Shown piece by piece: positions 15,609-37,389 of a stretch of DNA of 64,000 nt. This DNA is from Ophelia neglecta. Lineage: Eukaryota. The stretch is taken from NCBI GenBank assembly GCA_965285935.1, contig OZ260666.1, forward strand, positions 37,200,001-37,264,000. Reading direction: 5' to 3'. A program made the position numbers and the translations under genes. A model generated the notes under the pieces. That model did no database searches. It had not been told where the DNA came from and was given only the letters and a program-made list of their open reading frames with translations. Within the stretch, counting starts at the first letter, position 1. Each line of letters opens with the position of its first letter.

Positions 15609-16448
15609 GTGAGTAACATTTGAAACTTTTTATGTGTAAGGGCAGCCCCTACATCATCCCCTTCACTCTCAAAGTCATCATTTCATCATCGGAACCATCA
15701 CTGTCATTTAGGTCTTTTTCTGAGCACTACACGCTACCTGTAGTCTGTGCGGTGCTGTGGAGTTGCGATATCAGCCTTAATATGCTCTAAAGATAGGCCT
15801 CCCCTTAGTCCATGTTGTAAGTGGCACTCTATGTGCACCAGAGCTACAGCGCAGCTTCACAGCGTAGTGCCCAATAGAAACACCCCAAATTGTTAATGTT
15901 ATATTATGTCACATGGAGAAAACTGAATGGACTGCAGACTCTGCTCTATATCTGGCTTCAGGTACTGTAGGTCTAACTTTTGGCATGGTTTTCTGTGTTA
16001 CATTTTGTTGTTACTAGCCACTAGCCATGCTCAGTTGCTCACTTATAATAAAAAAAATAAGAGTACAAATCAGCCATGAAGTATGACTGACAATTCTTTG
16101 ATAGTCAGACATACAGTATGACTAAAATTACATATGAAAACTCTTTATCCCATTGCATGCTCAAAGACCTGATCCTTTAATTTAACGGATATGTCACAAG
16201 TCAGCTGATATTTGTAATAGATGTTTAACCTTATTATAAAACAACTTTCTTCTGAACATTGAAAGTATACACCCTTTCTTCCTGCTTTTACAAATGTGTG
16301 TTATCCTGACCAAGATTTTTATTACTAAGATGTGTTTTCGTGTCTGATAGCTTTTAACCAAATGAAGTTGATTTTAATATTAACAGATATGACACGTTTA
16401 CAGACAAATTGGCTTAAATAACCATGTGTTTTATTGTTTCGCATGCAG

Positions 16449-16721
16449 CCGTGTCAGAACCTGCATATTTCACCCGTATGTTGGAAGATGCCACTGTGGC
16501 CGAGGGCACAGTCGCTGAGTTTGTGTGCGAAGTTCACCCCCATGATGCCGAGGTCACATGGTACATAGATGGCATTGAGGTCCATCAAAGTAACAAATAC
16601 AAATTAAGCAAAGCCCATGCTGAACGCCAGTTGGAGATACTAAATGTAATACGCAAGGATGATGGCAAAGTTTCAGTAGCAACTTCAGATGTGGAGTGTT
16701 ATGCTACTCTTACTGTGGAAG
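16449..16721 (+). CDS. Exon: Ig domain
   Basis: catgcag|CC ... GAAG|gtaggt; 273 nt, phase 1-1. Confidence 0.88.
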
Positions 16722-18070
16722 GTAGGTTGGAAGTGGGAAACATTGCTGGCTTATTTATAGAACTTACAGGCCGAATGGATACTTATCATGAAAAAAAAAT
16801 TACATTTTAAATGCAAAAAAAGATGACCAGTAGCTTTTAACACACTCAAATAGCTTACTCAAATTATACTGTAGTCAAATACAATACATAATGTTTTGTT
16901 ACATTTTATAAAGATTAATAATACTAAAATACACCTACATATTCCTCATAAAAGAAAATCAATATTCCATAGACATATATAAGCCAAATAGCTTCGAAGA
17001 TATTGGTGAGTGTGTTTAACTGACTGAAGGAATGTTTATGTATGACTGAACGAAAACTTTAAATATGGATGAAATAACATATTTGGTTCACTAACGAATG
17101 TTCAACATTGGCTGGACACCTGCAAAGTACAAAGCATGATGAATTAGACTTAAAAAGGTGCAAAACAAAGTTCTAGTAGATGTCCATTCCAGGCATTTAA
17201 ACATGCCGTTTCCAATATAATTAATTCAACCTGTTCCGATATATAGTAGTCCTATTTCCTTTAGACCCAGTACATTTAAGACATTTTTTGAAAATAAAAG
17301 AGCTTTCCTAAAAGTATAATCAATTTGAATGCTCAGTGTAGATCCCTCTTTTATTGGAGTTCAAACAAAGGAAGTTTTATGTATGTCTTTATGAATGCTC
17401 CAAAAGGATTGACCAAGGCAACTGACAGAGATTAGAACTTAGTGATTAAACTAGTTTTTCAATTACATTTAAAACTATCTTACTATTTATTTTTTGCACA
17501 TACCACCATTTATTAACTTTAACATAGACTTGTTTGCAATGCCTTATTTGTAGATACTGAATTTAGATGCCCCTCCCCCATGGTCTAAACCCCAGGTCAT
17601 GAAGGAGGTGTTCTTGTAGAAACCTAAAAACTAGGCATTTAGATGTAGAACTATGCCCATTGTCTAATGCATGCATTTGTATCTATATTATTGTGGTGTT
17701 TCAATTGAGAAAAATAGAGACCCATCCTTCAATATTCTGAAATGTAACATGCATGTATTCTTTAATTAATGATTATCACCTACATTTTATTCTAGTATGA
17801 TTTATTCACCATAGCAATTAAGACGTTCTTACCGTTGTTATCATTTCTTGATTAAACATGATTGTTAGAAGTTTATTTTCATTAGATAGTTTCAGTTGTA
17901 GCATTTTTATTTCAAGTGTTTTTTTTCTGTATATTTACACTCGCTTTGAGAATTCCAAAGGTAGACCGTGAATTGTGAGTTATACGTGGCCACTGTTTAT
18001 ATTATTCTTGGATTAATGATATAGATTGATCAAAATGTTATTGGTTACATTAATGGGACTTATAGGGGAT

Positions 18071-18085
18071 GGGGGGGGGGGGGGG
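18071..18085 (+). repeat. G15 homopolymer, intronic
   Basis: ggggat followed by 15 G. Confidence 0.9.
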
Positions 18086-18207
18086 TTATTTCAATCTATG
18101 AATATGCCTTTGGAATTCTCAGGGCCATCCATCACATTTATTCTGTACCTCTATCATTTTCCCTAACACCCCTGCGTTGCAATAATGAGTGCCTTTCCAC
18201 TAACTAG

Positions 18208-18480
18208 TGTCAGACACAGAGGTGGTTGAAACTCGGCTGTTCTATGAGGCCTATGAGGAAGAGTTTGTGCACACAGCGGCTGAGTTCTTGTGTGCTCGGG
18301 GTGGGGTGGACACGATGGAGATCCACTCGACTTCTGATTCACAGGGCAAGGTCACCAAGGCTGTAGAGGGTGCTCAGCAGAGACGCTGGGTGGTCAAGAA
18401 AGTGTTTCTAGACAATCGTAGTCGCACAAGAGTAGAGCGTTGGTCTGTCAAATCCTATGTAGACTATGTATGCACTGCTG
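18208..18480 (+). CDS. Exon: 91-aa non-canonical (non-Ig or degenerate Ig) domain
   Basis: ctttccactaactag|TG ... GCTG|gtgagt; 273 nt, open, phase 1-1, GC-rich relative to flanking introns. Confidence 0.75.
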
Positions 18481-18674
18481 GTGAGTCACTAACACATTGC
18501 CGTTACAGCTAACACTCATTTGTTGTCTAATAATAGTATTCTTTTATGTAACTTTTATTTGTAGTTTAGTTGTTTTTTTCGAGTTGTTTTTACTAAAACT
18601 TGATGATAATTATTTCACATCATTTTTTCACTAGTTTCTCATGCACTTAACAAAACCCAAATTTTCTCTATCAG

Positions 18675-18962
18675 AGGCCTTGGCTGAAGTAGCTTTGGGT
18701 TTTATGGAAGATGCAGTTTTCTCTAAGCAAACTGTAGAATTTATCTGCCAGCTTAATTCACCTTGTGAAGATGTGAAGTGGCTTAAAGATGGGAAAGTGC
18801 TGGCAGCAGGGAAAATATTCAAAAAGTATGAAATGAGCAATCAGTTTGGAACAAATCATACCCTCACGGTCCATGATGTCACATTGTTTGACCAGGGAAT
18901 ATACACATTCAAAGTGGTGGAACTAGGAGCAAGGTTGAAAACTGATACAACAGTTACCAGAG
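18675..18962 (+). CDS. Exon: divergent Ig domain (may read through to a stop at 19135)
   Basis: ttctctatcag|AG ... AGAG|gtgtgt; 288 nt; VEFICQL...VKWLKDG...HTLTV...DQGIYTF. Confidence 0.8.
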
Positions 18963-20181
18963 GTGTGTTAAGTGACCATTCTGACAGTGATTATAGTGTA
19001 ACTAGCCCTATCCCCAAATCGCCTGATTTCCTTTCTTTACCAGTATATGAATTTAGTCCAATATCTACTAGCGAATGCGTAAATGATAGTCAGGAAAACG
19101 ATGACTATTTGTATAAATTCCAAAGTTTGAGTTAAAATTTAGTTCCAGACTTTCATAAAGAGAAATTTGAGGTAAATTTCCCATAGATGAACTTAACTGG
19201 TAGTCAATTGTCATTATAAATAAACTTAAAATAATATTTACCGTTTACTCATAAGTTAAAAAGAATGTTAAAGCATTCACAAATTGTCTAATACAATCTG
19301 AAAAAAACTAATCTTGTACAGAATCATGAAAATCATCATTACTATTTAATATAAGTGTAAGAAATTAATTGCGAGTGACCAACAATTACTGCTTGATTTA
19401 CCTTAAGGTCCCCAACTCAAACAATAATAATTTGCTATATTACTGTAAAAATTTCTTTCATTATTAGACATGATGACTGTATATATTGGCACAGTGAAGG
19501 TTTAAAAATATGTTCTGTAAATCTAATTCTATAATATGATTATTGCGTGCATGTATCAAAACCGATTAAATATTTATATATGGTATTTTATGTCATTCTT
19601 GTGTACATACTTTTTTGTTTTGTATTACCTTTTACTATAATTTGTGATAAAATGTCTATATCTAACCTGGGACTAGTTTCAATATACTAGTCCCAGATCT
19701 AACCATTAGGATGCTAATATAATTTCTATGTTTGGGCATATGTTAGTTGCGTGTGTCTGTAAAAGCTTTGCATCATGTTGATAATGCATGCAACTTTTTT
19801 ATCGCTTATGTTGTTAGTGCATGTATTTTATGCGATATCTCAGAAGGAATATATGTTCTCAACATTGCAAAACTTTGCAACAAGTACATCAATCTAAATA
19901 ATATATTATCTTCACATAACAAACACATGCTTAAATAATTTGCTGTTGACTAGCTTCTTCACATTCACACTCCTGTACATGTACATGCCTGCAATTCAAT
20001 TTCAAGCCAGATACTCTAACTGTATAATAGCATATTTGCTGGTACCTATGCACAACTCTTTCTTGGTGAACTGCTTCCACAGCTTAGGGAGCAAACATAC
20101 AGAGCAGTATGATTTGCTTAAAAACCAGCCCAACATTCTTAGCAACAATGATGGATGAAATGTGTTTGTTTTTGTTAATAG

Positions 20182-23100
20182 AGAATGCAGCTCAAAGACG
20201 ACATTCCGAGTGGGTGGGAAGTTCATTGCATGATGTTAGTAAATCGCCTCTCCGTGCCAGACTCGCTGCTGAGCTTAAGAGAAGGTCTGTATCCAGCTTG
20301 ACCTTTGAACCAGGGCTGCGTGCTGTTGACTTTGATACAAGTGGAGGTGGTCTAGATGAAAGCTTGGCCAGTCTGGACTCGGGGGAATACCAAGATGCAT
20401 CCCGCCTAGTGAGACGTAAAAGCCAGTTTGTTGAAGAAACCATAGATTCATTTGAGTCGAGAGCTAGTATTGCAGAGTTGACTAAATCACTCCCTGTCAT
20501 CAATGCTCCTTTGACTACTGAGGATAATGATGACGATGACCAGGTTTTTATTAATGAAACAGATGTTGCCATGTCCCCTCCCAGCAACACACATCAAAGC
20601 AAGACGTCCTCACCAGCAAGGAGCTTCAGAATGGAGAGAGAGGAGATGGAAAGCATGGTTAACAGGCTTTCCACCTCAGTTGCAATGGGTCAAGACCCCA
20701 GGCGCAAATCAGACTTACTTTACTTTTCCTACACAGAAGGTAAATCTCCTGATTTAGTCGTACATCCACAAGATGAACCGAGACTGTCCCAGCGCTTGTC
20801 AGTTGCTTCACCTCTGCAGCTTCCAAATTGGGGTTCATCTATGGAGGAGCAGGATTCATTATCCTACTCTCTCCCATCAGATCTAGATGATCAGACTGCA
20901 GGTAGGGATACAGTCGAGACAAAACCTGATCATGATTCTTGTAAATCACAACCAATTACAAATGATGAAATCGATTGTGTTAGGGACTCCTCTGTAAAAG
21001 CACACAAGAAGGCCTTCATTTCGTCAGATGTGTCTATGTGTGCCACGTCTGATATTTTAAAAGTTTGTGTTCCTCAACCCAGTGAATTCGAAGCTCGCTC
21101 CTCACCCCACCTATCTCCCTCATTAATTAACACAGCATCTACCATCGATTCTATTCCTGACGTTTCTCAAATTTCCGAATCTCAATTTGAGAACAAATCA
21201 GTTGTTGCCCGAGGGTTTGACTTTGATACTCCTCAGCCATCACTGCGATCACCTAGTCATTCTCCAAAGATGGGAAGACGCTCACTGAGCAACCTGCCGA
21301 ATGTTTCCTCAAAGACCTCTGACAATACAGGGAATCTTCCATCTCCTAGAATGGGTTTAAAAGCAGTAAGTGTACATGTGACTTCCAGTAGTTCACAAAA
21401 GAAACCGGACAGTGATAATCAGAAAACTTCTCAAATTCAAGAAAGAAAGACCAGTAGTCCATTACAAACCTCGTCTACGTTTAGTAGGTCAGACAATGGT
21501 ATCAGCTGCAGAGAAGACGTTCCTAGTGGATTAAGCGAGTCTGATTTCGACGAATACACGCATAGAATCAGAGATTCAGTTGGGAAGAAAAGGCAAGGAC
21601 GAAGGGCATGGGGTGATACAAGTAAAGACTCCAGCGACACTGACAATCCTAGATCAAACGCATCCAGTCTAATGGGCACCGACTCTTGCATAGTCTCATC
21701 TGACGATTCCGACTCTGACACCCCAAGTGAGGAAGAATACGATCTCACGTCAACAATTACCACGTCTACTGTCACTGAGGAAGATGATTGGTCGTTTTAT
21801 GTTTCAAATGCAGGGGAAGACAATGAAACTGCACAGTATGTTGACCAGCCACATATTATTTATATTGAGGAAGACATCAGTGATCTAGATTTGAGAGAAC
21901 AAATCAGGCAAGTCAAACTCAGAACCCAAGAGACCATCCCCGAACTAACGGAAGAGTCGGCGTCAGAATTGGAGACAACATCTGAATTACAGGCCATATC
22001 AGAATCTGACTCTAGCTCTGTTCATTCAGGTTACTGTGATGAAGCTGTTGGGAGTTCATACTCAGATACCGATTCCGATGGGCAATCAGACAAATCTGCC
22101 AACTCTGTACTAGTGGAATATCCAACCTCTTCTCAGCATTCATCAATAGTGGAGTCGATAGTGTGCGAACTGTCAGAGAGTGAGTCTGAGAAATGTAAAA
22201 CCCCTTGGAATCAACAGGACAATAGCGACCACAGTCCAATAGATGTCATAGATTTTCCGGACCAGAATCTTAGAGTTAGTATTGCAATGGAGAATGTTGA
22301 TCTTGAAATGGAAGAGAATGATACAAACGAGGATCCTTTTTCAGAGGAAGAATTGTTTGAACCAAGTGGTGTGCAGATTACTGAAACATATACTCATATT
22401 ATTTCATCGGAAAATACCCAAACATGTCTATCAACAGACGATCAAGTAGTCGATGCCAAAAACGAACAACCAATGTCATCTAGGAAAGGTCGACGAAAGT
22501 CTGCACCTGACGCTGGCGAATGGACATCATCAGCCAGACCAAGATCAAAATCTGCAGATGAAACTAAGCAGGCTGCTATCTTGTACAATGTAGATACACA
22601 CATTGAAATTAAATCACCAAAGAGAAAATGGAGAAGGTTTAAATCAATGGCTTACAAGTACTTCTCCCCCGAAAGAAAAGCAACCTTGAAAAGGAGTCAG
22701 TCAGAAAAGGCTTTGAACGTCGAGGAAGACGACGAAGGAACTGACTCAGATTGCAGAATACATAGAAGCTTGTCCACATACTCCCTTGGTGGAGAGACTG
22801 ATACAGATACGAATCCATCCTTGTCAAGACCCATTTCTTTTGAAAGACTTGATGTAATTCAGTATGGCTCTGGACATTCTTTGGATCAAAATATGTCGGA
22901 TGAGGAAGAAAATCAAAACTGGTCTGACGAGTTTGACAGAATACACAACCAGTCAATTGATCAGATGTCTCAGGAAATTTTAGGGATGAACTCTGAAATC
23001 CAGCACGTTGATGACGCTGGTTGTGTAAACAGGAGAGACAGAGTATGGTCTTCGTCTGTAACTGTCTTCAACATCAACCAAGACGATCCATCCACCATTC

Positions 23101-26100
23101 ATCAAGAAGGAAATGCAGAGGTATACCCGTCCGAAGCCAATGGCAGAAACACACCACACGCTTCAGAACAGAAAGAGGAATATGTAGCAAATATTGTGTC
23201 AGATCAAATATTTGATGACGAAAAAGGACTGTTTGTCAATCCAGACAAACAATTGGAAATCGTTGAAAAGATTTGGAAGGATAATTTGACTTTTCAGGAA
23301 GCCGAAAAAAACACATTATTGCCTATGAATGATACAGAAAACAATGGGAGTGCAGAACTTAAACAAACTTCTTCTGCGGACTATTTCGCCAGTAAAGTCA
23401 TTCAGGACATCATGGCTTCTTTTGCTGGAAATTCTTATGATTATCAGGACGAAAACCAGGAAGAATATCAGACTGATACCGAAGATGAGGGCATTGATGT
23501 AAGCAATTCATACGTGCCTGTCCAGGATACAGAAACTAGTTTTGACTTAAATGTGTCTACATTTGCAGATGACACCATGAAAAATATTGTTCTCGGGGCT
23601 TTGTCAGATATCTTGGACCGCATCAACCCAAGTGGAATAAAGACGGATCCTTTTTCACATGCAAGACAAGAATATCAAAGCAACCAGACAGAAACTGATT
23701 TTCATCTTAACGCCCAAATTGTAGACAAGAGTACCTCAGATTCTCAAATTCCGGTACCAGTTGACGAAAACAGTGTCACAAGTGCTCCTGTATCAATGGA
23801 ACCGATGCAATCAAAAGGAAAAGCCAATGAGGATTCTGAATATACAGACAAGTCTGGTTCTATCATTGCGGGATCACTGGATGAAGGAAATTGCACCTGC
23901 TCCATAGCATCCACTGAACCTAGGCAATCCGATGCATTTGCAAATCCTTTTATGCAAAGCTCAGCCAGTGACCGGTTTGACGCAAAATATTCTGAAAGCG
24001 ATGAAGAGGCAGATACGTGGGCAGGAAATATCCAAAATGTATGCAAAACAGATTCAATATGGTCCCAACAAACTACTGATGGGTTGAAACTGACTACACT
24101 GGGCAATTTTGATACCAATTCCGGCAAAATCATATCAGAGAACGTTCAAGATCAACAGTCAAATACTTTGGAAATACCAGGTGCTAGTGAAATACAACCA
24201 GGAAAAGACGATTTTATATGCGAAAAAGAAGATTGGAACCAGCAGATGTGTGTTGAAAATCCTGATATGCTGGAAAATACAAAAAAAGAAGATACCTTTT
24301 CTGAAAGCGATACTGCTAAAGGCTCTGGAACAAATAATATGTCTGAGCTGTCTGAGTTTGTTTCGGATGCTACAGCAAACATTTTTTATGGAGCTATTTT
24401 TGCCGTTCAACATCACTTGAGCGAACAAAAAGACAGTGAGGAAATGCATACTGGGCCATCAAACCTCTGCCTGGAAAAGGTCCGTTCAGAACCTCGTGAA
24501 TCCGAAGATGACTGTCATCTTTCCCAATCGGAACATTTTAAGATAGAGTCCAACCAAGGAAATTCTGAAAATGACCAGACGGGCCTATCAGCCCAGACAG
24601 GGGCTTCATTTCTGCATATTGCTGATGGCAAGGCTTTCGAAACAGTATCCGGAGCTCAATACAATCAAATGGAAAGGCTTGGAACATTCACAATTGAAAC
24701 ATCGAAAGCACCATTTGTACAAATTACACAATCAAACATCGAGCATTATGATATTGAAGCGGCTCTAGATAACCAGGAAATGGTTGGCAAGGAGTCCCGA
24801 GAAGTTGAGCATGTAAAGGAATCAGAGAGTAGTTTACAATTAAACACCACAATACAACATAGTGATACAGAAATGATGGTTGACACAAGGGAAGACTTAG
24901 AAATGCCACCCAATGGAGACCAGATTTCCATTCTCCCATCAGAATGTATTGCAACTGGCCTTTATGGAGATACCAAAAATGTGCATATTGAGGATCAAAA
25001 TCTACCTATGCATTCTGGGAAGGAGCTGGCCAGATATGCGAATTTTTCTAACTCATTTATACAAGATATAATGGCTTCCGCAATAAAAGCAGTGCTAAAA
25101 ATTAGTACATCCGAACAAAAAACAACATTAATGGAAGAATCGTGTTTATCTCCAAAAAGCCATGAGTATACATACAGTGAGAGAGGTGTTGTTGAAGGAG
25201 ATGGATCTGTTCTGGATGAGTCATGTGCCAAACTGTCCACCTGCTCACATTATGTCCCTGAAAAAATCGAAGCAGGACAAATAGATATGGCATTTGTTTC
25301 TCCAGAAAAGCCATCTGATGTAGAAAACGCGACATTCAAATCATGCAGTAATGATGAAAGTTCAGTCACACCTTTTCATATTATACCTACGGAAACTTTC
25401 TCTACTAACTCTAGTGGTAATGACGACTCTGAAAGTAGACCAACTGTTGAATTCCAGATGAAATCAGACTCGTCGACAGTTACAAACAACAAATTGAATT
25501 TAGTCAGTAATTCTGGGTCCACAGTACCATGCTCACGGCTTGATAACACAATAGAAACAACAAATTATCCAAATGGAGATGCCGAAATTCCAATAAATCA
25601 ATCTTGTGTTGCCAAAACCTCAACAACCGCATTCGGCAATATAAGACCTACAGAAGTTCCACTGGGTATAAGTGACACCGTTATAAGTTCTAGAAGTGAT
25701 ACAGATTCTACAGCGAAGCAATCTGATGATATGACATCTAAGACTGCTTTTATAGGGGATGATCGGTCGTTTTCGTTCCAAACTGCGAGAGAAGAAACAC
25801 CGGTGCAAAGTTCTGACGTATATATGAATACAGGAACAACTTCTATGTCAGAGGAATACAAACGAAATGTGGTCCTCACAAATACCAACTCATTAGAAAA
25901 TGTTGTTAGTGACCAGACTCTTGGTGTTGGAAATAATGAGCATATTGTAAATATGACAGATCCATATTCCAAAGTTGCTTTCCATGAAAGTGCAAGCAAG
26001 AAGCATTCACGTCTTTCTCACGCCAAACGTAATGCCGTTTCTAAAGGCAATTCCTTACCAACGAAGTCTAAGGGCAGTCTGTTCGAGCAGAGTGTTTTTC

Positions 26101-27845
26101 TGATACCAAATGATGAACCTCTAGGTCAGATGGAAGCTTCAGTGTCAGAAGTAACCCATTCTGAACATTTAAAAACATCAAAAGCTAAAATGTTTTCTGC
26201 CTTTATTATGGACGGTAAAGGAATTTTCGAAATTGATGACAACTCAGAAGGAATGCCGCTGACTGACCCAAATAGCCCATTCAGGCATGACAGCATAGAT
26301 GACAACTCTGAAAGTATTTTCAAACAAACACACGACAACCATTCTACGACACACAGTATAAGGGAGAAGGATGTTCATGCCCAACCATTTTCTCCAAACC
26401 TGACTGAAGCAATTGATGGAGGAGGCACACAAGTTGCCCCTGAAAATGAGGCTGATAACTTGCCTGGGGAAAGATTCGGGAGTGACAAATCAGATATTTT
26501 AACGCCAAGAAGTCAACCATCATTAGACAGTAGCTTGAAGGAATCGTCTATTTCTTCAGATCACCAAAAAGAAAACTCAGGCAATTTCTCTCCACCATTG
26601 TCCAGACCGCGGAGCATGTCTTTACCAAAGGAGTCACTTGCCCAAAATGAAGTAGATAACAGAGGTACTGGGAATACCGACACGTTAATGGAAACAAGTG
26701 ATTCAAACTTTACGACACTTTCAATGAATGAGTTTAGCAAAGAACGGCCTAGAAGTATTTCTTTAAACAAAGATTACAAGGACGAGTATAGTAGCATGTT
26801 GAACACATACTACGATGATTTAAAATCTGTAAGTGACACCGAGTCCCACCAGCGAGCATTTCGGTCAATCAATGAATCTCGAAGGGAGCCGACTTTCTCT
26901 CCCGGAGAAACAAGAGAATACATTGCTCCTTCTCATGAGGATATATCCAGGTTACCGGGAGATAGTGTTACAGAACACATTGAGAGGTTTTTTCGATCAG
27001 TAGATTTAGATGCTAGAACATGTGCAGAAATCAGCCCCAAGAACGATAAAAATCAACAGCAAAGTGAATACCATGACAAACCAATGGCCACTTTAAACAT
27101 AAAAAGAGATTCGACCCTTACAACTTCTTCCTCAAGAGATACAAAAGATGGTGAACGGCTTTTTCAGAAAGTAGTCACCGAAGGGCCAATTATCAAACCA
27201 GTGAAGCTTTTATCAGGCGGCACGCAGTTATATGGCCAATCTCCTGGTGTTCCTCATTTGGTAGAGACAAGTTCTGAAAAATTGAAACGTACAACGATGA
27301 ACAAAGAATATGACAGTTTGTCTGAAGTGAGCTCACTGACAACTACGTCTACTGGCACAGAGTGGAGCACTGGGGCATCTACTAGTGGTTCTATTCCTGT
27401 AACATATGATTCCGAGCAAACAACGGGTAAAATGCCTCCTGTTTTTATAGGTTTAGAACCACCATCTACCGGTATTATGATAAATCAAGAAAGACAATCT
27501 GTTTATTCTGCTGTCGGAAGTACATTTTTACCTCGAACCCCAAATAGACGATCTGCATCTGATGAAAACCTTTATCCGACCTTTATGTCATTCGATGAAC
27601 CCAGGACTACTCCGAAGTCTAGGTCAACATCCCGTTCAAGCTCCAGGTCCCAATCTCCTGTTGCCTCAGGCAAGGTCAAGATCAGGCGAAGAACACAGAG
27701 GATGGCATGTCAGCGGCCATCACGGCCGCTTAGTCAGCAATATGAACAGGCATCTCCAGAAGCCGAAGTTAGGCAAAGATCTAGCTCATTTGGGGCCACT
27801 GATCGCGCAGAGCTTCTTAAGGAAGGCGATTCTGAGGAATCCTGA
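20182..27845 (+). CDS. Giant alternative terminal exon, ~2554 aa, Ser/Asp/Glu/Thr-rich and largely disordered, ending in TGA
   Basis: 7.7 kb uninterrupted ORF; phase-1 acceptor tgtttgtttttgttaatag|AG matches the upstream phase-1 donors; no Ig/Fn3 motifs; stop at 27843-27845 followed by AT-rich non-coding sequence with poly(A) signals. Confidence 0.85.
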
Positions 27846-29283
27846 ACGGTTGCCTCAATACGTAGATGTACATATTCTAGTCACAATCCGTAGCACAGCT
27901 GATTTGTTCTCATTTTCCATATCCTTCCGACAATGTTAGGCGAATTAGTGATTACACCAGTTCTAAAGGTGTAAATTCACAGAAATGCCATTGAGATTAA
28001 AGACACATTTAGCAGCGTAGTTTTATTAGAGTATTAGTATTAAACTAGTTTGTTAAATTCATACCGCTGTTAGTAACAAATTTTGCCTGCCAAGGTTATT
28101 TCTGATTTGACACTAACAAGTTGCCTTTTTTTTCCATTACAGATGATCTGTAGGTTTAGGTAGCAATGATATAATAAGACCGCAATGTTCACGTGGATCA
28201 CATGTTTGGTAGTATTTTATAGGAAGCTTTTTAACCAACAATATTGTATATATATATTCGCATATAGATTATATCTTCCTTTAATCCCATGAGGGTCAAA
28301 ATGGTCATTCTTTCTAGCTTATGGCTCGCCGATTTCTCTACGACAATCACAATGGTGGGGTGTAGGTACGACGCTTTGATTTGACACTGGCCCGATACAT
28401 CGACAGTTATTATGTAATGCTGCAATCAAACACCAATCATCGTTTCCGAAAACAAAAAAAAACACAACATGATCAAATAGTGTGATTTTTTTGATAATTG
28501 TGCTTGTACCTTGATTACAGAATTGACGTGATAAATTCATGTAGATTTAGTATCCCAACCTGCTTGTTTGCTCTATTTCAGGCATGATTTCTCCTTGCAT
28601 GGGCAATATAAAGACAAATTAATGTTTGTATGTTTAATATGACCTTGTTATTGTATTAGTATTAACTAAGTGACTGTTTTAATGCAAATGAACCAATTCG
28701 TAATCTGTAATCTTTATTTTATTTTTTTCTATTTTACCATAACTTAAATCGGTATTTTGAGCCAAATATATGTGGTTTTAGCTAACAGCAATTGTTTTTG
28801 CTATTCTGAATTGCATGTATAAAATAGATAATCTTGACAGTACATATTTATTGTGTATATTTTCCTACCTTGTAATGATACTCTTAATTGAAAGTAAATT
28901 AATGGATGAGGATGTACGGTAAACGTTTGGCACCATGTTTGCCAACTGCTGGCAAACAAATGAAACCACCTTGCATGGATGGGTGTTGTCCATATATGAC
29001 TTGCTATCAGAAAAAGTTGAATCCAGAAACTCACATATTACTTACTATTGTTTTTACATATAATTAACCAAGAAATTGTATATCAAGGCAGACCTAGCCA
29101 TTGTATATAGTTTTATTATTAAAATTACCCATAAAAGTACCTGTATTTAAGAAGGCAAGCTCTTAAATCGGCCATCGGTGCTATAGTATTGGTAATTTGA
29201 TAGTAGTTCATTTTGTAATGCTTAGTATTGACACTAACCAAAATGAAACATACAAAATCCTTTTTCTGTTGCATGTTTGTTTT

Positions 29284-29293
29284 ATTAAATAAA
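29284..29293 (+). promoter_or_regulatory. Candidate polyadenylation signal (overlapping ATTAAA/AATAAA) for the giant-exon isoform
   Basis: tttATTAAATAAAg with upstream TGTA elements and downstream tccgtttgta; further AATAAA at 29499, 29520, 30059 and 30075. Confidence 0.45.
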
Positions 29294-31967
29294 GTAATAG
29301 TCCGTTTGTATAATTAAACTTAACAAACCTTACAAATGGGTTATATTCCATAGGCTGCATAGATAAAGCATGATATAATCATGGATACACCGAATGTTAA
29401 CAATTAAGTTTAATGTATAATGTTTAACAAGGGCAACTAATGTAGTGGATTGTTCTGTATGAAAAAAATCATTTGTAATTAGACATCGCAATTTTCTAAA
29501 TAAACATATCATATATGTCAATAAAATCAACCAATGTCTTAATACAACTCATAATGTTTACATTTACCAAGTTTCTTTTTAGATTATTCGATTGAAACTG
29601 TACAGGTTTTAAACATAAACTAATATTACCTTCTAGTATGCCATAAAAACCTCCAAACCTAACAATGTAGTCGGATTCATAAGCTACAAACATAGTCCTG
29701 TCATTTATTTGTCCCAATTAATCGGTCTATTTTACCTCGTATCACTTCATGGCATGTATTTATTGTTCATTTATAATCCGGGACGATGGAGCTGGTAAAA
29801 CCGTCAATTATGCATTAACCTTGGTAAAATTTATGAAATTGGCATATACTGCGTTATATCTAAAGATTCAGAGCACACGGCTTGATAAAAGTTCATGTCA
29901 TACACTTGTAGCTAAAATAAGTACTAGTAGTTAATCGTTATAAACTTTTTATCTGTAACGTTGTAACTACTATTTTTTCTGGCAAATATACTCAAATTGC
30001 TCTATACTTGCCCAGTGAATATGTTCTGCTTTACTATTGTGCTACCCCGGCTTAAACCAATAAATCAATTATTAAAATAAATATCTAAATGAAAGCTGTT
30101 AGATTATCTTGTTAATATAGTTATATAAATATTTTATGAAAGGAGTCTAGGCATGCACAACTACTACACTAGGAGCGAGAAAATAATATCCAAATAAACC
30201 AAAAACAAGATATTAAAAAAGTGAGTCCCTTAAATGAAATATCACCCAGACTAAACGCAAAGGATAATATAACTATGTGGACATAGTGCACCAGTGTTTC
30301 ATTACACGGGGAAATTATATGCCTTAAGGAGTTGAAGAAACTGATTAATATACTAGCATATCTAAATCGGAGATCTTAGACCTAAGCTTATATTAATGTT
30401 TGAAAACCAGCGAAATCTTGGATGAGGGTTAGAAAAAAGCGGTTGGCAGCTTTTCAGGCCACACAGTCTCTTTCATATAAAAGTGGCTTTTTAAATATCG
30501 TGAATTGATACTGGGACACAATGCAAAATCAATAAAGAAGTAGTATTCATTAAATCTGTCCGAATTCACCAGGAACCGTCCATCAATTGCAAGCATACTA
30601 ACACCAATCACTAGTTCCCAACGTACAAATAAGCTTTTAACAAAATTTATAATTTATAAAAGAAAATTTATTTAAATATAGGCAGTCTATACAATATGAC
30701 ACATTTTATGTAGCGGGTTGTATTTAAGACTTAACCTGAAATAAATACAGGTTAACGTACCATGCCTTTGTAACAGGCAAAGCATTCCAAAAATATTTAA
30801 CGCGATTCCAACCACGGTATTTCCAAGGTGCTGTCACAAACAATAAGAATACAGTAAATTATACATTTTGGGTAGGAATTTATTTCTAATGTCGCGATTT
30901 TCTTCTATTTAGCAAAATTCAAGTCCGGCGGAATATGGAAAAGCATTCCAGATCCTCTCGTAATAGCAGAAATGGTTTGTCATTGCGACTTAGATCTATT
31001 CTACATTCCGACTTTAATACCCACGAAAATACTTTTTACACTTTAGCGGAATAAGCATCCAGCAAGCACTGTTGACTTAAGAATAGTAGCACGGCCCATA
31101 TTTGATACAATTTGTCGATTATACAGGAAGAAAGAAACATTGTCCACTCTCTTAAAAAATGACCACTAAAGTTGTTTTTTCCAAAATCGCAATGTTTATC
31201 AACCAAATGAAATATCACTTATACATTAATGCAATTTTCAAGATGTACATGAGGAAAAACAAACAATAACAATAAAACATATTAACCATTTGCAAATAAT
31301 TTGTTAAAATCTTGAAATTCAAACTTAGACAAGGTCATATAAACTGGACTGAGTGAACACATTGGCATATTGTTCGGCATACAGTTTGATATTTTCTACA
31401 TCGGAAAATGCACATGGTGAGTAGAGATGGTTCAAAGTATGATCCGGATATGCCAATTATATGCGCATGTATCTGAAGGACCCTGCTATTGCCTTGCATG
31501 TTGCATGTTATTGTAATGTAATATTGAATGTGATATCTGTAAAATGAAAGCTGAACCATGGATATATCATATCACTGTCTCAACAGTAAGTCTCAGAACT
31601 CTGTGTAAGTATTTTTTTATTTTGGGGTAGGCCTACATACTGTTATTGGTTTAAAGGAATTATCCTTTTTTTTTGTCCAGCCATTTTCATCATCATTTGC
31701 ATAATAGCTATATCTATGAATCTCGCATGAACATCTGACGAATACAGTATACGTTCTTACATTCTATCCACTTTTATCTGAACTCTTTATCAACAACTTA
31801 TGGCAGAGATACATTAACACCATTAAACAGCTAGAAAAGATCCCTATAATACAAAAGAAACATATTCAGTATACTTCATTATTCTTGCAATCGGTATTTA
31901 AAGTTCAGCTACAAGCGACTGTCAATGACCATTCACCTTATGTTGATAACATTGCTCCTACTTCCAG

Positions 31968-32234
31968 AACTTCCAGCTAAGTTTGTCGTTCCACTAAAAG
32001 AAACAGAATCTGTGGAAGGTACTACTGTCACGCTTGAATGCCAACTTAGTGAGCCAGACCAGGTAGTGGTCTGGCTAAAGGATGGAAAGGAAGTCAAACC
32101 GACTGAAGGCGTGGAACTGGTGGCCGATGGTTTATGGCACAGACTCATTTTGAAGGACGTGCCCCTTGATGCCGAGGCTGAATATACAGTCCGAGCTGGA
32201 GAGGAGGAATCCAAAGCTATGCTGTGGGTGGAAG
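31968..32234 (+). CDS. Exon: Ig domain
   Basis: cttccag|AA ... GAAG|gtaggt; 267 nt. Confidence 0.92.
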
Positions 32235-34452: not shown

Positions 34453-36473
34453 AGCTACCTCTTCCTGGTCCTGGTGATGCTTCCCCTGTGTGCTCTCCTG
34501 ATTTAACGTACAGTCCCCCTCCCACCCATCCTATTCTCTCTGACCTCTTAATACCAGTACGCCAAAAGGCATCGGATGAAAAATACGTCGTGACTGTGAC
34601 CAACAGCTAGCAGTAATAGATGACCGCACAGAATTTGATATTTCTGAGCACATGGTCTTGGCTCCTAACACAGTTCGATCAGCAAAGATTATTGATCAAT
34701 CTGGAATGAGCGAAAATGGCCTTGTCGATAATGAGGAACTTTTACATATAGACACGCAACCATCATCTATGATGTCATTGTTACCCACGGATCAACGGAA
34801 GGCGGATTTTGTAAAACCCAAAGCAATTCGTGAATTTTGTGACGATGAATTAATGAGATACAACAATTGTATACTCTTTGGCCCTGAACCAGTAGAGTCG
34901 GCAAATGAACTGATTACACCAGATGAAATATTTATCCCAGATGATAAGGTTCATACTGTTGTGAATTTTGAAATATCAGAGAAGCGAGACACTGCCATTT
35001 CACAAGGGCAAAAAGCACAAAACCTGGCAATGGCCAAGCTTACGGATTTTCCCGTTCTCGTCAAATTCATGAAAGAAAATGAAGAAAACAGAGGAGAACA
35101 ACCCGAACCCATCGAGGATATACTAGAAAGGTTCTTCGACTCCATTTTGTCGGACACCAACCAAATGGAATCTACTCATGAACTAGCTATGCCGGAAGAA
35201 ATGTGCATGCGTTATGAAGATGTTCATATTGTTCAAAACTTTGAGGTTACAGAACCACAACAGAACTTAGCTGACATAACTAAACAAGAGGCAGAACAGC
35301 TTGCTGTAGCAGAAATGTTGGAATTGCCAGCTTTTATCAGATTTGTCGAAGAAACGGAAAAGTTGTCTGATGGAACGCCTGCTCCAATCGAAGATATCCT
35401 TAGGAAATTCTTCGATTCGATTATTAATGAAACAGAAAGTATAGAAACCACCACAGATTTAGAAATACCTGAATCGACGTATATAACAAACAATGAAGTT
35501 CATACTGTCGAGATTTTTCAAGTTCACAAAGATATGAAACGTGACCAATTCAAAGAACAAGAAGCAGGACAATTGGCGTTGGCAGACATGTTAGCTTTGC
35601 CCGCTTTCGTAACATTCTTAAAAAACAGAGACGATAAAGGCAGCAATGCAATAACTCTAACTGAAAATGTTCTATCGGAATTTTTTGATTCGATTCTGTT
35701 TGAAACAGAGCTACTTGAATTAACAATAGATATAAAACCGGTGGATGAGTGTTTGTTATGCGCTGAAGATCACATTACTTGTCAGCCAGAGACACTAAGC
35801 AGTAGGGGTTTAGTTGACGTTGTTATAGAGAGAGAACTAGTCAACTTACCAGAGGTAGAAAGTTCAAGTTTTCCAAGTAAAGAGTTCAAAGAAATTGAAC
35901 ATGTAGCTGCGAAACCAACGGACAATGATGTAGAAACGTCTGTCAAACGATTTTCTAACTTAGCCCTTTATGAAAGTGTGCTATATGAAACAACTGACCC
36001 AATGCATAGCCCAAAAGGATGTGAAGTAGAAAGCATTAGGACAGTCTCTAGGTTTGAAATAGCAGATATATATGAAACAGAATCACGGAAGAGACAAGAT
36101 TTTGATGTGGATCTTGATGAAGATTTCTACATTAAAATTCCAATTTTTGCTGATGATGAGCATCATCACAAACACCTGCAAAGATTCGAAACGAAACGAC
36201 GAAAACGATATCAAAGACTTGAATCTATTGAAGAAGAGCTAGTTCCTGAAATTGAGAGGCCAGTCATTACAGAAATAAAGTTATGCAAAGATGAGGCAAT
36301 TTCTCCCAAAGAGGAGGATATAATGGAGACAAGACCTGATGCTCAGAGCCAATCAGATATTGACAAGTTAACTGGAATGCCTCCCGCAGACTCGCTAGTA
36401 GGTGTCAGTTATGATGAAAGAAGGGAGTCAGACAGTACCATTCAGGAGGCGGATTCTGCCGTGGATGAATCAG
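34453..36473 (+). CDS. Large acidic non-Ig exon (~670 aa) with three ~91-aa repeats; apparent 1-nt frameshift at ~34579-34583
   Basis: Acceptor cacttttgtag|AG and donor TCAG|gtatcc are both phase 1; long ORF 34580-36586; 5' boundary uncertain. Confidence 0.7.
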
Positions 36474-37389
36474 GTATCCTGGCATTATCGTTGTGCACGA
36501 ACGACTCAAAACTAATAAAAAGAATCTTGCAGGTTATTCAATTCATTTCTGGACAATGTAATCAATATGTGCAACTCTTTGGGTAGGTTATGTGTCTTAC
36601 CAATATTTATACTAATCTTAAATCTATCTGAACAAATTATATCTATGTCTGTGTAGATGTTTTAGCTATCTATATACCTTAGCGAGCTTATGGTTGCATC
36701 GTAGGATACATGATGAAGTGGTTGAAACAGTTTATCATGGTCAGGTTACATATACAGCTATATGTAGACAACAAATGTGCATAAAAGCATCTATGGATCA
36801 AGTCTGACTTAACATGCTTTCCTTTTCTTACTTTCATTTCTCTTCTCTTTTATATGCTTCACTTTGTGTTTTTCTCGTATCATATATGTATTCATTTATA
36901 CCTGCTGCTCATCTTGTCTACACAGTAAGTCTGTAGAAGGAGTTCCATGTTATGGATTGTGTGTATGACCAGCTGGTATAGACAAAATGCAAATCCATTG
37001 ATTTTTCACCACGTTTTGGGGGTTAAGATCACATTCTTTGAACTTTGGTTCGAAAAAAACTGTATGAGCATTCTATCCATTGGCCTTTCTTTGTTAGAAA
37101 TATGCCATTCGTTACTTTATCATCACTGAGTCAGCATAGAATTCTCACCATTCATTTCATTTCTCAATAGAAACATATTTGAGGTGTGTTACTTTTCAGC
37201 ATGTATATAATAGGTGTCAGTTCTTTGTGGATAGTCAAAGTCCTCTAACATTCCTTCTTGGGTCATTTTTCATAAGAATGTGACTTTTGGTGTTTTGTCA
37301 ATGTTGTAAAAACTCAGAAATGAAGGCAGCTACGCAGATAAAACAGTTGGCCGTTTCCCAATTGATTCATACTTGATTTGATAATGCAG

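Follow-up and report, generated by a model that had tools for sequence, protein, structure and literature searches.

We analysed a window of 64,000 nt from the annelid Ophelia neglecta (GenBank assembly GCA_965285935.1, contig OZ260666.1, positions 37,200,001-37,264,000, forward strand) that covers part of a titin-like locus. Positions given below without a prefix refer to this window. A single exon of 7664 nt at 20182-27845, lying among exons for Ig domains, is in all likelihood a conserved terminal coding exon, judging from comparisons of DNA and predicted proteins. It is probably spliced to the titin exons upstream of it, while the full model, in which a titin-like gene would have three alternative fates at this place, we hold at about an even chance. 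The features that matter for the first part of the argument are as follows.

20182-27845, + strand: giant stop-containing exon of 7664 nt, with 2553 full codons and TGA; orthologues P0001, P0002 and P0003
20160-20181, + strand: acceptor of the giant exon, a pyrimidine tract with AG at 20180-20181, phase 1
27846-29293, + strand: presumed 3' untranslated region (UTR), with ATTAAA at 27996, 28039, 29118 and 29284 and AATAAA at 29288
28128-28216, + strand: conserved non-coding block of ~90 nt, ~280 nt past the stop, 74% identical to L002:6988-7081
P0001: orthologue at locus L002, on an ENA contig
P0002: orthologue at locus L003, on an ENA contig
P0003: orthologue at locus L004 in the polychaete Paralvinella palmiformis, deposited as KAK2170148.1, 'hypothetical protein' (L004 is JAODUP010000004.1, 1440899-1466046)

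The giant exon and its orthologues

The exon occupies most of an uninterrupted + strand frame of 2585 codons (20088-27842) that is closed by the TGA at 27843-27845. At the frequency of stops seen in the window (0.0665 per codon), a frame of this length would stay open with a probability of ~1e-77. The phase of the acceptor is such that the initial two bases of the exon, starting at 20182, complete a codon begun by one base of the preceding exon. After the stop, GC content falls to 0.30-0.33, and no open frame of 60 or more codons lies wholly inside 27846-29293 on the + strand. The non-coding block at 28128-28216 includes a 23-nt core identical in the two species, a palindrome with two overlapping CAGATG E-boxes; at 74% identity it is better kept between L002 and the window than the proteins of the giant open reading frame (ORF), which are only 40-48% identical. 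The block may act as part of the 3' UTR, as an enhancer or in an internal promoter.

The exon is present in one copy in the genome. Its product has 2553 residues, a mass of 282.5 kDa and an isoelectric point (pI) of 4.59, with 15.0% Ser, 17.1% Asp+Glu and 9.5% Lys+Arg. All sequence searches were made exon by exon. No Pfam domain was found in the product at E<=0.01, while the neighbouring exons match I-set; comparison with PDB sequences gave no match at E<=0.1, self-comparison detected no internal repeats, and searches of Rfam and for repeats were negative. Two parts of the giant ORF gave no usable match in ESM Atlas, a protein search with the whole ORF among candidates of 1400-4470 aa gave no match, and an exact look-up of the ATG-started ORF returned no record. 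The orthologues likewise matched no Pfam family at E<=0.001.

Many sliding windows of the product (40 out of 50) fall on the disordered side of the charge-hydropathy line. AlphaFold2 (AF2) modelling of aa 760-1160 produced three isolated helices and a mean pLDDT (predicted local distance difference test) of 39; this value is only a weak fit to disorder because the alignment behind it, with four rows, is shallow. In the DNA runs X1-X3, compared over window positions 16350-22349, the opening 2.2 kb of the giant exon has 2.3 variants per kb and the 3.8 kb upstream of it has 6.5, and four of the five variants seen inside the exon are non-synonymous. This pattern fits a constrained yet fast-evolving unfolded protein.

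A phmmer search with aa 1-1200 against 1.84 billion cluster representatives gave three matches in all, P0001, P0002 and P0003, and no similarity to any vertebrate protein was detected in this search for these residues; homology of aa 1201-2553 was sought by a length-limited word search only. Identity to the orthologues is 31-48% and is concentrated in islands. The three orthologues end 4, 11 and 34 residues past the last aligned position, and we found no good phase-1 donor near the 3' end of the giant ORF; thus the stop is a genuine and conserved end of the protein and does not mark an intron.

The 5' border of the exon is also kept. Its first two bases are AG, at a phase-1 acceptor, in the window and in the two orthologues whose contigs include the 5' end, L003 (exon start 1351) and L004 (exon start 10155). 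In these two the frame is open for merely 13-20 codons before the exon, inside the pyrimidine tract, and protein similarity between L003 and L004 begins at the exon's first residue and is absent upstream. In Paralvinella there is an in-frame stop 20 codons upstream, and the first ATG lies some 110 residues into the exon, near codon 131 of the open frame; with no ATG before the conserved coding sequence, the giant exon cannot be a self-contained ORF there. The deposited Paralvinella gene model relies for its start on a 7-nt exon, ATGCAAG, that is not conserved in L003.

The surroundings of the exon are shared as well. L004 contains orthologues of window exons at 15.1, 16.4, 18.2 and 18.7 kb upstream and at 31968, 32554 and 32980 downstream; L002 contains orthologues of the downstream window exons, and the L003 contig holds just the end of the upstream Ig exon. 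Phase-1 Ig exons on the same strand flank the giant exon in the window, in L004 (on both sides) and in L002 (downstream). Taken together, the acceptor, the missing ATG in Paralvinella and the synteny make a self-contained single-exon gene unlikely and favour splicing onto some upstream part of the titin-like locus.

What the first-pass annotation, made from the letters of the window alone, had observed of this exon was borne out by these results, and its interpretation in part. It had described one ORF entered at a phase-1 acceptor (2553 full codons run from 20182, and the acceptor phase is kept in L003 and L004), ending in TGA with an AT-rich tail and AATAAA signals (the signals lie at 27996-29293), and a product free of Ig and Fn3 domains. 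The ~280-kDa disordered tail it proposed agrees with the mass and with the disorder prediction, and the syntenic giant exon that it suggested looking for in relatives was found in three other genomes, on the same strand between Ig exons wherever the context is visible. As for the acidic, Ser-rich and low-complexity character ascribed to the product, the first two hold; low complexity holds as a biased composition and fails in the sense of repeats.

Flanking exons and candidate 3' ends

The exons on either side of the giant exon, and a read-through tail behind the last of the upstream ones, are listed below (a slash marks the splice site).

16449-16721, + strand: upstream Ig exon, 273 nt, phase 1-1, donor AAG/GTAGGT; I-set E 8e-12; orthologue in L004
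18214-18480, + strand: upstream non-Ig exon, 267 nt, phase 1-1, donor CTG/GTGAGT; protein conserved at L004:8057-8359
18675-18962, + strand: final upstream Ig exon, nearest to the giant exon, 288 nt, phase 1-1, acceptor at 18673-18674; I-set E 1.6e-7
18963-19135, + strand: read-through tail, 57 in-frame codons past the donor, TAA at 19133-19135; candidate kettin-like C-terminus
19219-19224, + strand: AATAAA, 84 nt past the tail stop; a consensus match only
31968-32234, + strand: first downstream Ig exon, 267 nt, phase 1-1, acceptor TTCCAG/AA, donor AAG/GTAGGT; I-set E 1.4e-10

The flanking exons all have lengths divisible by three and begin and end in phase 1, which makes each of them compatible in frame with 20182 and with the others. 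The exon at 31968-32234, where phase-1 Ig exons resume just as the first reading of the sequence had it, is orthologous to L002:12567-12857 and L004:21101-21376. The 89 codons of 18214-18480 have no Pfam match at E<=1, and they have the motifs EFLC.RGG and KSY.DY.CT.G in common with Paralvinella; on this evidence the exon would encode a small domain of a type not yet recognised, or else an Ig domain that has diverged strongly.

The final upstream Ig exon, 18675-18962, has a weak donor (GAG/GTGTGT at 18963), and the frame continues through it for the 57 codons of the tail. The chance of such a stretch staying open is 0.02. A profile search with this exon gave five hits, with four other sources among them; all are ORFs on DNA contigs that carry the tail, and none is spliced. 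In the clade of the window, the tails of L005 and L006 can be aligned to that of the window and have internal motifs and a YLY[KR]-type end in common with it; the DNA past the stop is unalignable. The Paralvinella clade keeps a tail of its own, GTSFERFLI...DDDVF, and in its first nine codons L003 and L004 differ by four synonymous and no non-synonymous changes. Conservation of the tail as protein in L003, L004, L005 and L006 indicates that it is translated. The upstream donor seems to be kept as well, for its GT comes from a Gly codon that is GGT in five sequences out of five, though nearby synonymous sites are saturated. A kettin-like short isoform probably ends at the 18963-19135 tail, to judge from these alignments. 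The first-pass annotation had missed this second terminator, 1 kb upstream of the giant exon. With two conserved terminators in succession, any switch has at least three outcomes.

In the model that we favour, the weak phase-1 donor of 18675-18962, or that of an earlier phase-1 exon, would be joined to the acceptor at 20182; translation would then proceed for 2553 codons to the TGA, and the mRNA would end at some A(A/T)TAAA signal in 27996-29293. The product would be a shortened titin that retains the Z/I-band Ig and PEVK-like part, with a 282-kDa acidic, mostly unfolded tail replacing the tandem-Ig, Ig/Fn3 and kinase part. An alternative fate of 18675-18962 would be read-through of its donor into the 57-codon tail with its own AATAAA, and a third would be splicing past both terminators to 31968, giving a full-length, kinase-bearing protein. 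We infer every splice junction, the use of poly(A) signals and the function of the tail.

Several observations weigh against this model. Sequencing data containing the exon come from three runs of genomic DNA, whose contigs of 3.9-10 kb cross the introns (16.8-18.2 and 19.1-20.2 kb) without joints. Junction-spanning protein fragments were sought, for the 5' junction (A1) and for the last upstream Ig exon (A2), and the searches gave none, or only ORFs derived from DNA. In both the window and L003, an in-frame ATG closely precedes the acceptor. The match of intron phases is a one-in-three coincidence, and conservation of the phase among orthologues would be expected under any model. The tail with its own AATAAA lets the upstream unit end early, in which case the giant exon could be a separate transcription unit. 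Finally, the annotation of Paralvinella divides the locus into three genes, of 721, 1666 and 12714 aa; this locus is probably mis-split in the deposited annotation, because the 7-nt and 31-nt ATG exons look like ab initio devices.

What lies beyond the window bears on these matters. Downstream samples contain Fn3/Ig exons on the + strand to about C9:37.33 Mb, then protein-kinase exons at C9:37,334,158-37,343,619 (Pfam E 3e-16), ~70-80 kb past the window end, and, past the kinase, Ig exons together with unique Ser-rich ORFs as far as 37.374 Mb or beyond. The Fn3/Ig, kinase and Ig exons, in this order, lie on one strand over ~170 kb, which makes a single gene plausible. Thus the locus has the arrays of phase-1 symmetric I-set/Fn3 exons on one strand and the MLCK-type kinase near the 3' end that characterise the titin/connectin family, and at the level of predicted exons it is colinear with chordate titin and C. 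elegans TTN-1. We also observed further kinase exons on C9 at 40.70, 45.22, 54.29 and 61.75 Mb (L030-L033), 36-47% identical to the titin-locus kinase. The kinase at C9:61.7 Mb, 24 Mb away, is preceded by Fn3-rich sequence; by its motifs, this gene is the likelier orthologue of twitchin/projectin.

One could suppose that the locus is a pair of tandem genes. The giant exon and the tail would then end an I-connectin/Sallimus-like gene, and the part past 31.9 kb would be a separate gene with a promoter in 29.3-31.9 kb, so that the giant exon would be terminal and nothing would skip it. Two consecutive conserved terminators at the boundary are what one would expect from such an arrangement. I-band-type and A-band-type proteins are indeed encoded by separate genes in arthropods and nematodes (PMC12198301), the Paralvinella annotation opens its 12714-aa gene 1.2 kb past the giant ORF stop, and the conserved palindromic double E-box block after the stop is a possible promoter or enhancer element. 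However, the first downstream Ig exon sits at a phase-1 acceptor, with no in-frame ATG before the acceptor within its open frame in L002 and L004, and the 31-nt ATG exon of the Paralvinella model has no match in L003. Comparisons with relatives revealed no conserved first exon, either for the downstream part or for a nested gene. Since the GGT/GT donor is kept, the final upstream Ig exon would be spliced to something downstream. Moreover, a separate twitchin-like gene exists elsewhere, and the kinase half here would be a third giant gene; one titin gene at 37.1-37.37 Mb is somewhat more economical than an I-connectin-like gene plus a third giant kinase gene. We consider tandem genes unlikely, though of the alternatives they survive best.

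An independent gene nested in the locus, with its own promoter at 19.2-20.2 kb and a start that would lie in a small 5' exon or be the in-frame ATG of 20109, also appears improbable. In-frame ATGs do precede the acceptor (20109 and 20148 in the window, 1323 in L003), the unit before it carries a stop and an AATAAA of its own 1 kb earlier, the giant exon product and titin have no domain in common, and the Paralvinella annotators gave the giant ORF a gene of its own, KAK2170148.1. Against this, the upstream ATG is not shared by Paralvinella (a stop interrupts the frame there, and no ATG precedes the conserved coding sequence), no conserved 5' exon or promoter block was seen between the tail and the acceptor in comparison of L003 with L004, and position, strand and the phase-1 acceptor are kept across deeply diverged worms, at an ORF identity of 31-48%.

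It is very improbable that the exon is an internal cassette, in which a donor at 20740 (AAG/GTAAAT) or 20902 (CAG/GTAGGG) would give a symmetric exon of 558 or 720 nt, long mRNAs would include just this initial part and the stop would normally not be reached: phase-1 GT sites with fair consensus scores do occur (20740, 20902, 21727 and 22180), but a few are expected by chance in 7.7 kb, and conservation in other genomes extends over the entire frame of 2553 codons, with the distal islands and the C-terminus, which implies that translation to the stop is required in at least one major isoform. An internal exon made with a donor near the ORF end was considered and rejected, no such donor being in phase 1 and the C-terminus being conserved.

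Motifs in the tail product

The conserved parts of the giant exon product and its predicted amphipathic helices are listed here.

21753-21953, + strand: conserved island A, aa 524-590, from the four-species alignment
22572-22874, + strand: conserved island B, aa 797-897; a basic KRKWRRFKSMAYKYF stretch, then three conserved RxxS motifs
23379-23426, + strand: amphipathic helix 1, FASKVIQDIMASF; kept in L002, fits the paired-hydrophobic motif, AF2 helix with pLDDT ~55
23562-23624, + strand: amphipathic helix 2, FADDTMKNIVLGALSDILDRI; from the paired-hydrophobic motif search and AF2
25038-25106, + strand: amphipathic helix 4, FSNSFIQDIMASAIKAV, aa 1619-1641; counterparts in all four orthologues
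27177-27353, + strand: conserved island D, aa 2332-2390, KLLSGGTQLYGQSPGVPHLVETS...
27492-27845, + strand: C-terminal Ser/Arg-rich end and stop; conserved C-terminus in the orthologues

Alignment A3 has 48 invariant columns, mostly within island B; other conserved stretches of the product are aa 2256-2270 and aa 2332-2436. The basic stretch and the RxxS sites of island B suggest, as sequence motifs can, a kinase-regulated docking site. A paired-hydrophobic motif with four-residue spacing has three matches in the product versus 0.16 expected in shuffled sequences, and two of 500 shuffles reach three. By these matches the helices resemble those with which A-kinase anchoring proteins (AKAPs) bind the RII subunit of protein kinase A (PKA), and for two of them AF2 predicts an isolated helix. 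It is no more than a likeness: a motif of this kind is common to amphipathic helices in general, and the product has no Pfam AKAP match. Prediction of a complex between two copies of this genome's RII docking domain (L010:1495-1629) and aa 1056-1090 gave scores of 0.24 and 0.23, below the mark of 0.34 and telling neither for nor against binding, for a peptide that is not the four-species helix 4.

As a working model, we consider the tail as a Z/I-band-anchored, phospho-regulated docking tail. The role of 'signalling scaffold' that had been proposed for it would fit the conserved RxxS motifs and the amphipathic helices.

We also saw a 370-codon frame at L013:1465-2574 (G000:C8, ~43.909 Mb) that has an RII-type docking domain, an inhibitor-like site RRHSVS and two apparent cyclic-nucleotide-binding domains. 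The genome seems to have here an intronless gene of PKA-RII type in addition to the multi-exon RII gene L010.

The downstream half and comparison with known short titins

Three observations concern the region past the giant exon. In-frame ATGs are present 14 and 9 codons before the 31968 acceptor (in 31925-31967) and are not conserved in L002 and L004; by analogy with vertebrate Cronos, they would allow an intron-started transcript of the downstream half. Among the downstream Ig exons there is a domain-free frame of 668 codons (34580-36583) with about three repeats of 90 residues, each having an amphipathic motif of the EDIL-x-x-FFDSI type. No counterpart of this frame was found in L002 or L004, and it may be lineage-specific. 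In turn, L002 (9660-11634) and L004 (18339-20309) have an extra Ig exon and an Ig/unique exon of ~450 codons between the giant exon and the orthologue of the exon at 31968, and the window has neither. From these exon comparisons, the boundary region is a place of rapid gain and loss of unique exons.

The giant exon has a parallel in the vertebrate Novex-3. Both are very large single exons (>2000 residues in vertebrates versus 2553 here). Novex-3 is located before PEVK; unlike it, the giant exon here comes after PEVK-like segments. Novex-3 is exon 48 of TTN and encodes six Ig domains separated by insertion sequences (PMC13649281), whereas the giant exon is without an Ig or any other Pfam domain and without detectable homology to it. 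Each belongs to a titin gene, is read on its coding strand and brings a stop and a poly(A) signal of its own (PMC13649281). Each lies between I-band-type Ig exons and the remaining gene, and inclusion of Novex-3 yields a short titin confined to the Z/I-band (PMC13649281), as would inclusion of the giant exon if the splicing that we infer here takes place. As a candidate for a Novex-3-type class, the exon would thus share the stop and the poly(A) signal and lack the Ig content and the homology. The independent origin relative to vertebrate Novex-3 that the first-pass annotation proposed fits these data, as aa 1-1200 match three related genomes only. Why such large exons persist is still called a mystery (PMC6098106).

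The upstream tail invites comparison with Drosophila kettin, which the invertebrate titin-like gene sallimus makes as a short isoform of the Z/I-band and which ends before the thick filament (PMC11081514, PMC13649281). Both the continuation of the frame past a 5' splice site to a stop and AATAAA, and protein-coding constraint on it, were found at 18963-19135. The layout of this tail, with AATAAA at 19219, matches that of the 3' end of kettin, which in Burkart et al. 2007 is reportedly formed by an exon that extends into the intron as far as a stop and a poly(A) site. In the production of kettin from sallimus a weak donor is said to compete with read-through and polyadenylation. The sallimus locus is without a kinase-bearing A-band half, and the locus here carries one. 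We know of no counterpart of the giant Ig-free exon described in sallimus.

With C. elegans TTN-1 and chordate titin the locus shares the order of parts on one strand: Ig arrays and PEVK-like repeats, tandem Ig, Ig/Fn3, kinase, and Ig with unique insertions. In contrast to them, it is marked by two conserved terminators at the boundary of the I-band-like and A-band-like parts. Connectin-family genes are reported to share a chromosome (PMC12198301), and the extra kinase exons on C9 echo that. Whether one ancestral gene was split in protostomes or two genes were fused in chordates was left unresolved in a 2025 study (PMC12198301). Taken as a whole, the reading of the locus as a single protostome titin gene of chordate style (I-band, Ig/Fn3, kinase), with a three-way 3'-end switch at the I-band/A-band boundary and an independent analogue of Novex-3 carrying phospho-regulated and amphipathic-helix docking motifs, is tentative, and we would not call it probable.

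Short titin isoforms restricted to the Z-disc and produced through an internal terminal exon are already known from vertebrates (Novex-3) and from flies (kettin). What is new here is the giant exon with its orthologues in three other genomes and its conserved C-terminus. If the proposed splicing is true, an Ig-free terminal exon of annelids at an equivalent place, with no detectable similarity to Novex-3, would suggest that the same solution has evolved repeatedly. The giant exon also marks the exact boundary of the I-band-like and A-band-like halves in a protostome titin locus. There the two halves lie next to each other on one strand, their phases would permit joining and two terminators separate them, an arrangement that bears on the question of split versus fusion; a single-gene, three-way locus, if true, would be a living intermediate for the scenario in which one titin gene was split in two.

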